Origin: Bugula neritina
Lineage: Eukaryota; Animalia; Bryozoa
Direction of reading: 5' to 3'
Assembly: GCA_964035545.1 (NCBI GenBank)
Contig: OZ037765.1
Location: 32,053,504 to 32,117,503, forward strand
DNA: 64,000 nt
The position numbers were made by a program, and so were the translations under genes. A model generated the notes under the pieces. That model did not search any database, had not been told where the DNA came from, and saw only the letters and a list, made by a program, of their open reading frames with translations. Of the stretch, positions 20,166 through 24,896 are shown in pieces (the stretch's first letter is position 1; each line of letters begins with the position of its first letter).

Positions 20166-23100
20166 ATGAAATCGCCATGCCTGCTGCTCTTATTGATGAC
20201 ATGTATAAGTGTCAGCTGTGAGAAAACAAAGCCTGATGCCGAGAATTCGCTGCCTCTGAGTAATCACCTAGATTTGGATGACCCCACTGACCTTGTCAGC
20301 TATCTCGGCAAAGCCCATGAGAGACTGGCTGAAGAGATCAGTGACCCCAGTGACTACCAGTTTGGTTTAGGAACCTGTGTGGGTGATTGTAACCCTGACC
20401 TTGACGTGATGAGCCAGCCAGTGGAATCTGGTACACACTTTTTATAGACTCAACTCTGGCTACTATGTCAGTCTTTGGACTATAACGTTGTATCTACTTG
20501 TATTCAACTGTTCATCTCTCATAAACAATTTGTAAAGTTATGAAAGAGATTAACTTTCCGAATCGTTTGAGAGAGAAAATGTGGTTTAAAAGTGTTTGGA
20601 GAGCTTTTTAAGAGTTATGAATGAAAATGGAATGTTACTTTTGTTAAATGCTCTAGATTTAATTCAGCAATAGCAACTGTGTTATTGTCTTGGATGACAG
20701 AATTTAGTGTTATGTTGTATTAAATGTTGAGTGTTCTTGTGCTGTAGATAAAGTGCTGCCCAGCTGTACACAAGGCAGCATTGAGCTCAACGTGGAGCTG
20801 GTTTACACTAAGAGACTTGTTGCCTCTATTCTTGGACACATCACGGGTTCTGTAAGTCGGTACTATGCTGCCTCCCTTAGTTATTGTTTATTTACAAGAA
20901 TTATAGCTATTGTCTTCATTATAAATTCAAATTAAATATTTGATTGGCTGAGCTTATTTGACATTACATGCCTTCAACTTTATGTCTAATTCTAGTTGTA
21001 CTGTACTTTGATGCAGGAGTCTAGTTTGAGCACATACATAGCACACATGACTATAAATGATGAGGATTTTTCTTCCCTTCAACGCTTTGTGTCTTCCGCG
21101 GAAGTGGGGAATGTCCAGGGAGCTATAGAAGCTGTCATCAACTCTATACACCATATAGAAGCTGTTCAGCCAATGAGCTTCTCTCCTTTTCAGTGGATGT
21201 CGGATAATCAGAGTATGATATACTCTACTCTCCAGGTACTAATACTACTACTACTGCTAGTACTACTAGTACTACTACTACTACTACTACTACTACTAGT
21301 ACTACATATACTACTACTACTATTGCTACTACTACTAATACTACTACTACTACTACTACTACTATTACGAGTACTACTACGAGTACTACTACTAGTACTA
21401 CTACTATTACCAGTACTACTAGTACTAGTACTACAAAACAACAACTACTACGCTGCTACTATTTTCTATAAACTGCATACTTTTTAGATACTGCTGATCA
21501 TTCTAATAGTGTACGTTCTCCTGGCACTCACTGTTAGAATCTGGTGGTATTTTGGGTTCTGGCGGACGTTTTTCTTTTTCGTCACACTTAGTTTCTTTGT
21601 CAGCGTGCCTTGGACCTGGGTTCACATGTACAAGGTAGGTCAAGGTCAATTACTGTATGTCTTCACTGTCCATGTTTGTGCATCTATTAGGTACATCAGT
21701 AGCTGATCAGCGCAAATACTTTATAAGTCAAATGTTTACAACAGCAAAACCTGGCAGCCAGGTTGAAGCGAGCAGATGATAGGCCAGATGTAAGTCTGCC
21801 TCCATTTGAATGTGACCCACAAACCTTCTCCTGGTACCAGCTTCTTACCTACGACTCATCCAAGTGCGCCAAGTACTACGAGGATCTGGTCATCGAGCCT
21901 TTCTGGGAGGTCAAGCCTACACAGGTGTGTAAATGTGTTCTGTCATGTTATGTACAACAATAACAATCACAATGATCACAACTGTGACTACCTTACCTTA
22001 AGTAAATCAGCTAAATGGTATATTGCATTTTTAAATTTAATGTGAGTTTTCTGAACAATTGTGTTTTCTTTTTAGTATTTTACTAATTATCACAAATGCA
22101 AGATGAAAGAAATTTTATTTTAAATAGTGGATAATTTTAAACTGTCATAATTCTTTCTCATGGTAATTGTTTAAATTTTTTTTGACTAGAATTTTGACTC
22201 AGTCTATCTACTAACTGATAGAATTTTCAGCTATTTTCTACCATCAGTTTTAAACTCGTCGAAATGAATTTGCAAACATAAATTTTAGGCTATAGCGATC
22301 ACATTTGTGGAGTTTGTGTGGAAACCACTAGCTATCATGGGTGAACCTTTGGGTATCTTTATTCGAGACCTTATGGCACCCCTCCCCTTCTGGATGAAGC
22401 CGGTAGTAGCAGTTCTCGGTCTAGTGTTCTTGTGGTGGTGTCTGGTGCTCATGTCAGGGATGAAGGTCTGGACGTGGTTCTTCTCAGTAGAGCCGGCTAA
22501 TACGACGCAGAACGAGGTGGGCGGAGCTACTCTCTCATGTCCTGTGAATATATTGACAAAGTTCAGGTTTTATTGAGCCAGCTTAGTATGAAGTAATGTG
22601 CTAAAAATAAGCAAATATCTCAGGGGTGCAAGATATATAAATCGATATTTTATTTTTTCTCTCATTAGACATTTCTATTTTGCTATATTGAAGATACATT
22701 TTGCTCAGTGTGAAACACTATGCTAATTAGAATCACAAAGTTTTAAGTTTTTTTTAATATAAAAAGGTGCCAAGTGGACGAATAGTTTTAAATAGAACAA
22801 ATACTAAACCTAACATCGTGTTGAAACCATAAGCAAGCTGCACTAAGTCCATAGGAAATAACGTACCATGTCAATACAGTATCTCATAAGATTCTATGAT
22901 TTCTCAGCTGGCGGCTATCAACAACACCGTGAATGACTTGAGGCAGATCATGACGTCTGCTGCTGAAAGCAATGCCAGTAAAGACAGCGAGCTGCGTGAC
23001 ATCATGAAAGAGCTACGTGGTCAGGTAGAGGGGCAGTCTGGGATAGCTGAAGTACTTCCTGTCATGGGGGAAATGGTGCCCGTTCTACAGGAAATGTGTG

Positions 23101-24896
23101 CGGATTACGCTCAGCAACAGAACTCTGTCCCGGGATACGGGCGGCAGGTAATCTTCACTGCATTGCTAGCTGCTGCGTACATGTTGTCTAGTGAACTATA
23201 CAGCTACTGTACACATTGTCTAGTATACTATACAACTACTGTACACATTGTCTAGTAAAATATACAGCTACTGTTCTCATTATATTCGGGATGTTTTATG
23301 TGTTTTAGATTTCCGTGGCTACAGTAGGCAAATCAGAACACATAGTACACAGTGGAGGTGATACAGTACATGGAGAGGTTGATGCAGCATATTATAGGGG
23401 TGATACAGTACACAGTGGTGGTGATACTTCCTTTCTCCCATCAAGTGTGTTCAGTATATGTCGTCCCGATCATTTAGTGCTTACAACAGCCAACTCTGCG
23501 GCTATCATTGACTTCTATACTGCTCTGGGAATGGAATTAAAAACTTTTGGGGTAAGTTTTCATGTATATTGTTCTGACGAGAACATTTTCACACACCCAA
23601 ACAAATGAAAAGATATGTTTTCTTCCTTAGTGTAGGACAAAGCCTAGTTCGAGTCAGATGCATCTGATAGTTAAGTCAAGTTGAGACTTGCACTGAAAAA
23701 TTAAGTCATGCACTTGTATGATTACGCCAAGTAGATCGTGAGATTCGTATAAAATTGCTTCACTATAATAAAGTTGATAGGAATAGCAAGTCTAGCCAAG
23801 ATAATAAAAAGTAGTAGATTGTTTCTTTTATTCTAATTTTATATTGCTTTATATTATATTGTAGTTTTATATAGTAATATTTCAATAATGTTATTGGTAT
23901 AACTGTAGACCATTGAGTTTAATACTTTGCAAGTTAATAAACCTACTAGGAATTAGATTTAAAAGTGTAAATAAAATTATCAAATTACAAATAAATATTG
24001 AAAATAAAATTAAAAATGGTTTGCCTACTATAGTTAATGTAATATTTTCCTCGTTATATCAATATACTATTATGTTCTCTCATTTCTCACTGAGTATATC
24101 AATACACTATTATATCTTCTCATTCTTGTAGGGTGCGAGAAAAGCCTTGCATATGAACCAGTTTAAGATTAACATACACATTGCGGGGGCTGAGGTATCT
24201 CCCCATGCTGACAAACCTTCACCAGGGTGTCTGGACATATGCCTGGCCTGTAGCTGCTCAGTTGACATTACACTACAGCACCTCAAGGTTAGCAACATCA
24301 TTTCTTATCGGCTGTTTGTTTAAGTAAGTGTAATGACATTTATTAATGGCTGTGTGTAGTCTAATAGCAAAGGTTCTTTGATTGGTGTATGCTGATAACT
24401 GTAAACTGGCATATATGTACTCGTATGTTTGGTTTTCTTCATAAGTTTAGTTAGTATGCAGTTTCTTTCCAACCTTCAACAGTTATACTTGTCATAATTG
24501 TCTCTGTTTCAAAGACTTTATGGCTGTCTGAAGTATTGTTCGAATTCTAAGTTTATTGTGTGCACTGTTAATTAAATGTTGTAGTTAAAATTTACTGCAC
24601 AATAAATAACTACTCAAGTTATAGCTAACAGGCTATCTTGGTTTTATATCATAGATTAGCTAAATAACTTAGTTGCATAATTTTAGAATAAGAATATAAA
24701 GCCTATACTTGGTCCAGTGAAAAGGACTGGTGCCCTAGGACCCATCACATCGGTGTATCTCAGAGACCCCGATGGTAATCTGGTGGAACTCGGGCATTAT
24801 CAGCAAGAAAACATAACTACCAGTAGCCTAGTCACTGAAAATTCTTCCAAAGATGTTTTGACTATCAATTCAACTGAAGTATCAGCACCCATATGA
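20166..24896 (+). CDS. CLCC1: CLCC1-like ER membrane protein fused in frame to a C-terminal GLOD5-like glyoxalase/VOC domain
   Basis: CLCC1 features: signal peptide [20 protein letters not shown] segment [36 protein letters not shown] and a third TM. Coiled-coil exon 22908-23147 follows. Exons 23309-23551, 24132-24287 and 24687-24896 give [51 protein letters not shown] (GLOD5 signature). All junctions are phase-compatible. Confidence 0.8.
21236..21432. repeat. (ACT)n microsatellite in a CLCC1 intron
   Basis: Begins at the GT donor and explains the poly-L/poly-S ORF tails. Confidence 0.95.

Follow-up and report, generated by a model that had tools for sequence, protein, structure and literature searches.

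A conserved CLCC1–GLOD5 fusion gene in the bryozoan Bugula neritina and four relatives

A ten-exon gene and its two halves

A stretch of 64,000 nucleotides (nt) of the Bugula neritina genome (contig OZ037765.1, forward strand, positions 32,053,504 to 32,117,503; hereafter the window) carries at 20166–24896 of its plus strand a gene whose 5′ part resembles CLCC1, a protein of the MCLC family, and whose 3′ part encodes a VOC domain of the GLOD5 type. Both halves belong to known families; together they form a conserved fusion with a new domain architecture. The gene model was built by reading positions 19800–25400 and translating exon by exon, and homology was likewise searched one exon at a time. 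The model comprises 10 exons and nine introns, all nine with GT..AG ends, and its 1992 nt of coding sequence make 663 codons and a TGA stop. A first-pass annotation made from the sequence alone had proposed such a fusion, and the features it described are all found on reading the DNA: the CLCC1-like frame runs without a stop to a phase-0 donor at 23147 (exon 7 ends ...GGCAG/GTAATC), the next acceptor (TTTTAG/ATT at 23309) is also in phase 0 after an intron of 161 nt, and the frame then continues from the VHSGGDT linker through ...PDHLVL..., ...INIH... and ...NLVEL... to the TGA. Exon 8, which opens the GLOD5 part, was said to lack an ATG ahead of the domain; of its four ATGs three are out of frame, and the sole in-frame one (23531) lies within the VOC domain.

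Intron 7, at which the two halves meet, consists mostly of a 32-bp (base pair) tandem repeat (3.3 copies, 23177–23281; Tandem Repeats Finder, TRF). A poly(A)-signal scan found neither AATAAA nor ATTAAA in this intron, and read-through from exon 7 meets a stop at 23253–23255. The linker that follows contains VHSGGDT twice and corresponds to a degenerate 21-nt repeat of four copies (23344–23427, TRF).

The CLCC1 half is identified by collinear matches to the Pfam family MCLC (PF05934), exon 5 covering profile positions 249–296 (19.4 bits, E = 5e-4) and exon 6 following directly at 297–350 (24.7 bits, E = 1.2e-5). Taken alone, each exon falls below the 25-bit cut-off, because the scan was made exon by exon. 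Proteins matched by exon 6 in phmmer include P0005–P0008, which themselves score up to 2e-90 on MCLC, and look-alikes of exon 6 in the ESM Atlas are exclusively MCLC clusters (scores <0.9), with no glyoxalase family among them. A search with exon 6 of a library of 1.84 billion proteins gave eight matches, mostly single-exon fragments, and no full-length relative among them. The first-pass annotation assumed for CLCC1 a signal peptide and three transmembrane (TM) helices. Kyte–Doolittle windows above 1.6 occur in exons 4 and 6 only; the N-terminal leader, and in exon 4 a second hydrophobic stretch, were recognized by eye only.

The GLOD5 half was compared with human GLOD5 (PDB 3ZW5), which is matched by exon 9 alone (E = 3.7e-7) and by exon 10 alone (E = 1.2e-7). 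Profiles that include the relatives described below extended these matches: the VOC part of exon 8 (five species) aligns with 3ZW5 residues 25–57 (E = 1.8e-5) and with STM3117 (1.1e-6), exon 9 (four species) with residues 60–109 (E = 1.5e-13) and exon 10 (four species) with residues 115–147 (E = 1.7e-13). Exons 8–10 together thus span 3ZW5 residues 25–147 collinearly, which is the whole domain. Exon 8 taken whole gave nothing but noise against the PDB, on account of its linker; a query with the VOC part by itself, and likewise the five-species profile, brought out the match, which covers the opening strand and helix in the group formed by 3ZW5, STM3117 and 3EY7/3EY8. Exons 9 and 10 also match Salmonella STM3117 and 3EY7/3EY8. 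The motifs DH, INIH and NL.EL show no variation among the available species and line up with identical residues in 3ZW5, STM3117 and 3EY8. The annotation's complete GLOD5 domain, with a His in DH and a Glu in NLVEL, holds good. The His, His and Glu at these positions are metal ligands in VOC enzymes generally. GLOD5 itself is a conserved VOC-fold protein of solved structure for which we know of no reaction, and in the papers searched no account of its biochemical function was found.

Whether the genome also holds a free-standing GLOD5 was a point that the first-pass annotation had raised. Exons 6, 8, 9 and 10 are each single-copy in the 216-Mb genome, which therefore has no stand-alone GLOD5; neither a GLOD5-like copy elsewhere nor a second CLCC1 was found in it.

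RNA across the junction, and a spliced leader

No RNA run on record contains the window stretch as such; twelve small runs, from the same organism or from a ‘symbiont metagenome’ RNA-Seq library, share about 5–6% of its words. Assembled contigs of four runs were aligned to 20100–25400 at a 95% threshold, 21230–21463 being skipped as repeat. One of these (run X9, contig record 7, RNA-Seq, 2754 nt, ∼95% identical) contains exons 1–9 with all introns removed. The splice across intron 7 that the first-pass annotation had predicted is present in it exactly, 23147 being joined to 23309 by removal of a GT..AG intron; the shorter flank of the joint is at least 92 letters long. A retrocopy as the source of this intron-less contig was considered and rejected, exons 6, 8, 9 and 10 being single-copy. 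The sole indel between contig and genome lies in the linker, where 23357–23398 occurs once more in the contig and adds 42 nt in frame; the VHSGGDT-type linker shows in this an in-frame length polymorphism between lineages. A contig of a further run (X3, 1307 nt) is spliced across exons 1–7. In the four runs no contig enters intron 7, and none ends or acquires a foreign 5′ piece at 23148–23309, although contigs can miss rare forms. Transcripts terminating in 23148–23300, and an independent or trans-spliced first exon for GLOD5, had been named in the first-pass annotation as outcomes that would speak against a fusion, and neither was seen in these runs.

All RNA contigs labelled as the same organism depart from the assembly by ∼4–5%, with variant letters common to them, so that the transcriptomes stem either from a sister lineage or from a haplotype that is very divergent. 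Upstream of 20160 the X9 contig carries 928 nt that are not the leader described below, and the 30 letters preceding 20160 were found neither in the window nor in the genome at up to three mismatches. This 5′ part may represent either a chimeric end of the contig or, in the sister lineage, an alternative 5′ exon joined by cis-splicing.

An RNA contig of run X2 has 22 foreign letters joined at 20158–20160. The same 22-letter leader occurs seven times in the genome, six times in a cluster at 31.46–31.63 Mb of C3 and once on C2. An upstream TGACGCACG box is conserved in all seven copies, a GT donor follows the six clustered ones, and in the one copy that was folded (L002) the leader is predicted to pair with the downstream (intron) part (z = −4.4). 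The clustered copies are spliced leader (SL) RNA genes, and the messenger RNA therefore begins with a trans-spliced leader 6 nt ahead of the ATG. The seventh copy (L001), which has the SL promoter box and the leader, may represent an SL gene that is dead or else a trans-spliced 5′ end that was captured. An Rfam scan of one SL RNA locus gave no family match, and our literature search found no prior report of SL trans-splicing in bryozoans.

Conservation of the layout in four relatives

Relatives were found through matches of exon fragments to contigs, an exon-6 alignment scan of metagenomes adding two more, and their layouts were established by tblastn and by direct reading of the loci. The first-pass annotation had looked to related genomes for the same architecture, and it is there: CLCC1 followed in frame by GLOD5 was found in four other species (L021, L025, L033 and L036), whose assemblies are independent and come from at least four different projects. 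In all four, exon 7 is stop-free and ends in a phase-0 GT donor, a phase-0 acceptor lies 91–385 nt further on, the frame is open from that acceptor into ...DH.V..., and GLOD5 exons 9 and 10 come next wherever the contig extends. In L025, two short phase-0 introns flank a predicted mini-exon of 30 codons. With pairwise identities of 48–67% in exon 6, the window and the four relatives represent well-separated species. The VOC exons match the CLCC1 core in their degree of conservation (58% and 61% identity, respectively, between the window and L021), and VOC exons are 53–73% identical among species sharing 25–33% in exon 7. The VOC motifs DH, INIH, D.C and RDP..NL.EL are invariant among the species available, and a motif in exon 7 (EM.P.L...C.DY) is common to three of them. 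The linker of L033 likewise begins with GSGGD, and the equivalent of intron 7 in L036 contains a ∼38-bp tandem duplication (1577–1652).

Beyond the clade, no GLOD5-like exon lies within 10 kb downstream of octopus CLCC1 (L027), and two more distant CLCC1 loci (L028 and L030) likewise have none. Octopus CLCC1 used as query in a word-based search brought up three cephalopod proteins and nothing else, each with MCLC alone; this search is too insensitive to judge other phyla. This sampling is thin (octopus and two further loci) and does not delimit the extent of the fusion. In the literature searched, no paper treats CLCC1 and GLOD5 together; the only one naming CLCC1 and ‘glyoxalase’ is a proteomics list.

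The window gene is preceded by a Cdc20/Fzr-type WD40 gene (∼11000–14900, plus strand) and followed by an ELP3-like radical-SAM gene (∼26300–30400, minus strand). L021 retains both neighbours in the same order (Pfam WD40_CDC20-Fz; Radical_SAM weak). Long tracts of TAC, TAG and TAA with three- or six-base periodicity occur in intron 3 (21236–21463), a short way upstream of the SL acceptor (19800–19880) and inside the WD40 gene (13949–14455). Coordinates of the gene, of the exon 7 junctions in the relatives and of the SL copies are collected in Table 1.

Table 1. Features of the fusion gene, the corresponding junctions in relatives, and spliced leader loci (UTR, untranslated region; TM, transmembrane; joints are splice joints in RNA contigs)
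Feature	Coordinates	Strand	Basis or content
5′ UTR, 6 nt	20160..20165	+	between SL acceptor (AG at 20158–20159) and ATG
Exon 1	20166..20430	+	ATG at 20166, signal-peptide-like N-terminus, lumenal part; joint 20430/20748 in X9 and X3 contigs
Exon 2	20748..20851	+	translation; joints in X9 and X3 contigs
Exon 3	21017..21235	+	translation; covered by X9 and X3 contigs
Exon 4	21488..21634	+	hydrophobic segments (TM1, probably TM2); tblastn matches in relatives
Exon 5	21745..21924	+	CLCC1 ‘knuckle’ region, two cysteines; Pfam MCLC match; joints in RNA contigs
Exon 6	22289..22516	+	amphipathic-helix-like stretch and last TM helix; most conserved CLCC1 exon; MCLC matches
Exon 7	22908..23147	+	CLCC1 C-terminal helical tail, stop-free, phase-0 donor
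Intron 7, fusion junction	23148..23308	+	161 nt; spliced out in X9 contig, GT..AG
Exon 8, first part	23309..23440	+	linker with VHSGGDT repeats
Exon 8, second part	23441..23551	+	first strand and helix of VOC domain, invariant DH
Exon 9	24132..24287	+	middle of VOC domain; KINIH, D.C invariant; joint to exon 8 in X9 contig
Exon 10	24687..24896	+	end of VOC domain (RDP..NL.EL), Asn/Ser/Thr-rich tail, stop TGA 24894–24896
Candidate poly(A) signal	25095..25100	+	first canonical AATAAA 3′ of the stop (200 nt)
L021, exon 7	10457..10657		donor CTA/GTATGG; next acceptor 10748/10749
L025, exon 7	2082..2282		donor AGG/GTAAGC; next acceptor 2573/2574, via optional 90-nt phase-0 mini-exon
L033, exon 7	2509..2742		donor ATA/GTAAGT; next acceptor 3127/3128
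L036, exon 7	1187..1414		donor AAG/GTACAC; next acceptor 1692/1693
SL RNA genes, six conserved copies (L002–L007)	G000:C3:31460438–31629764		leader ends ...TAGACTAACTTCTGTTGCTAAAAG/GTAAAT
Seventh, divergent leader copy (L001)	G000:C2:10831158		after ...AAAAG unrelated sequence, without GT donor

Alternative readings, proposed role and comparison with known systems

Taken together, these data make it highly probable that window positions 20160–24896 (plus strand) are one gene, with the spliced leader at 20160 and nine cis-spliced introns, and that the clade's ancestor acquired the fusion in a single event, with retention ever since. Several observations weigh on the other side. The X3 contig breaks off 7 nt beyond exon 7, with nothing on exons 8–10, a gap that may reflect the 95% threshold (exon 8 of X9 differs by 5.6%), breakage of the assembly at the linker repeat, or an isoform lacking GLOD5. 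Exon 10 has read depth in X9, yet a contig joint between exons 9 and 10 is not listed, and this junction is predicted from homology and conservation. The RNA comes from a lineage ∼5% off the assembled genome, and assembled contigs cannot give isoform proportions. In-frame Met codons lie five residues (L021) and one residue (L033) before the DH motif, so that a separate GLOD5 product is possible in these two species, and in an animal that uses SL trans-splicing the exon 8 acceptor could also take the leader. The fusion polypeptide is known at sequence level only, and an enzymatic role of its VOC domain is one that we can only infer.

The most substantial rival, although an improbable one, is a two-gene operon, in which CLCC1 would end and be polyadenylated within ‘intron 7’, GLOD5 would be a cistron taking the leader at 23309, and the cis-spliced form would be minor. 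Since the gene takes a leader at 20160, the first-pass caveat of a trans-spliced first exon for GLOD5 describes a live rival, which none of the present evidence supports. SL trans-splicing is real in this genome and used by this very gene; read-through of the exon 7 donor meets a stop within 6–52 codons in all five species, at a short distance from the next acceptor; the Met residues of L021 and L033 stand just ahead of the VOC domain; and the X3 contig ends shortly beyond exon 7. However, the read-through tails differ in length and sequence and are not conserved, and no in-frame Met precedes the domain in the window, L025 or L036, three of the five species. The recovered leader contains no ATG, and the first ATG of a message joining it to exon 8 would be out of frame in the window, leaving such a message without a usable start. 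Neither AATAAA nor ATTAAA occurs in the introns scanned (window, L021 and L025). The four runs contain neither a leader nor a loose end at 23309, nor a contig into intron 7, which is absence of support for the operon and not proof against it. Moreover, a phase-0 donor, a phase-0 acceptor and an open linker are kept in five species, none of which an operon requires.

A second, still less likely reading accepts the fusion transcript and takes its VOC part to be non-functional or non-catalytic, either a captured neighbour that is drifting or a dimerizing or scaffold module. It would suit a GLOD5 family without demonstrated activity and a linker that is fast-evolving and variable in length. Against it, the VOC exons are better conserved than exon 7 in the comparison given above, the species available show no change at the His, His and Glu presumed to bind metal, and this is the sole GLOD5-like sequence of the genome; simple decay is excluded, whereas a purely structural role is unlikely but conceivable. 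That a chimeric RNA-Seq contig or a misassembled genome joined unrelated genes is hardly credible: the X9 contig has 928 nt ahead of 20160 whose last 30 letters were not found in the genome, so this contig may be partly chimeric, and only one of the four runs has the 23147/23309 joint, but that joint is the exact in-frame removal of a GT..AG intron rather than a random junction, and the adjacency recurs in the independent assemblies of four species.

On the single-gene reading, the message would be read as a protein of ∼663 amino acids: a signal peptide, a lumenal N-terminal part, a CLCC1 membrane core (TM helices, a cysteine-bearing lumenal knuckle, an amphipathic helix and the last TM helix, in this order), a helical tail of ∼80 residues, the repeat-rich linker and a complete VOC domain of GLOD5 type. 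As the VOC domain follows the last TM helix, it would be expected on the cytosolic or nucleoplasmic face of the endoplasmic reticulum (ER) or nuclear envelope, going by the published CLCC1 layout (PMC13061601). The cytosolic tethering advanced in the first-pass annotation fits that layout, the placement itself still being an expectation. A flexible linker, variable in length, would tether the domain to an oligomeric protein that remodels membranes, and the published oligomeric CLCC1 ring would keep it locally concentrated, in accord with a fold whose usual working form is a dimer. From general knowledge of VOC proteins, a metal-dependent reaction is suggested by the conserved His, His and Glu; the most likely role would be a VOC-type reaction of this kind at the CLCC1 membrane, with a small or lipid-derived molecule as substrate.

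Long retention of a fusion within a single animal clade classically predicts functional coupling. Read as a ‘Rosetta stone’, the gene would place GLOD5 and CLCC1 in one pathway across animals, with GLOD5, as a cytosolic or nucleoplasmic enzyme, acting on a small electrophilic or lipid-derived metabolite at the places where ER and nuclear-envelope membranes are remodelled or fused by CLCC1 oligomers; this we regard as a speculative and rather doubtful extension. CLCC1 itself, formerly a doubtful chloride channel, is of late viewed as the metazoan equivalent of yeast Brl1/Brr6, needed for fusing the inner with the outer nuclear membrane in pore assembly and for hepatic neutral-lipid flux (PMC13061601). 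If true, the pathway reading would give orphan human GLOD5 its first functional context, and it raises a testable question: whether GLOD5 binds or acts near CLCC1, and whether its loss alters nuclear pore assembly or lipid droplets. The value of the fusion is that of a lead and not of a mechanism, lineage-specific fusions being common and many of them without a general message.

Among known systems, the arrangement resembles conjoined or read-through genes and the SL-resolved operons of nematodes, tunicates and flatworms, in that two genes that normally stand apart lie head-to-tail within 161 nt in an SL-using animal. It differs from them in lacking a stop in its upstream part, a start in its downstream part and a poly(A) signal between the two, while phase-matched splice sites are kept in five divergent species, all of which argues for an obligate fusion rather than occasional read-through. 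The GLOD5-type proteins of known structure (GLOD5, 3ZW5; STM3117, 3HNQ/3HUH; 3EY7/3EY8) have the motifs DH, N.H, PG..D.C and RDPDGNL.E in common with the fusion. Known members of this type are, however, free-standing proteins of about 130–160 amino acids, whereas here a start-less domain forms the C-terminus of a membrane protein. Cephalopod CLCC1 proteins have 375–390 amino acids and MCLC alone, without the VOC domain of the fusion. Vertebrate CLCC1 has a long disordered C-terminal tail, in place of which the fusion has a helical tail of ∼80 residues, a linker and the VOC domain. With human CLCC1, the structural homologue of Brl1/Brr6, the fusion shares the collinear MCLC matches of exons 5 and 6 and probably a signal-peptide-like start. 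The published ‘MFH’ layout of CLCC1 consists of a TM helix, a lumenal knuckle, an amphipathic helix and a TM helix (PMC13061601), and the predicted segment order of the B. neritina protein, with hydrophobic helices around cysteine-bearing and amphipathic-looking segments, appears to fit it.

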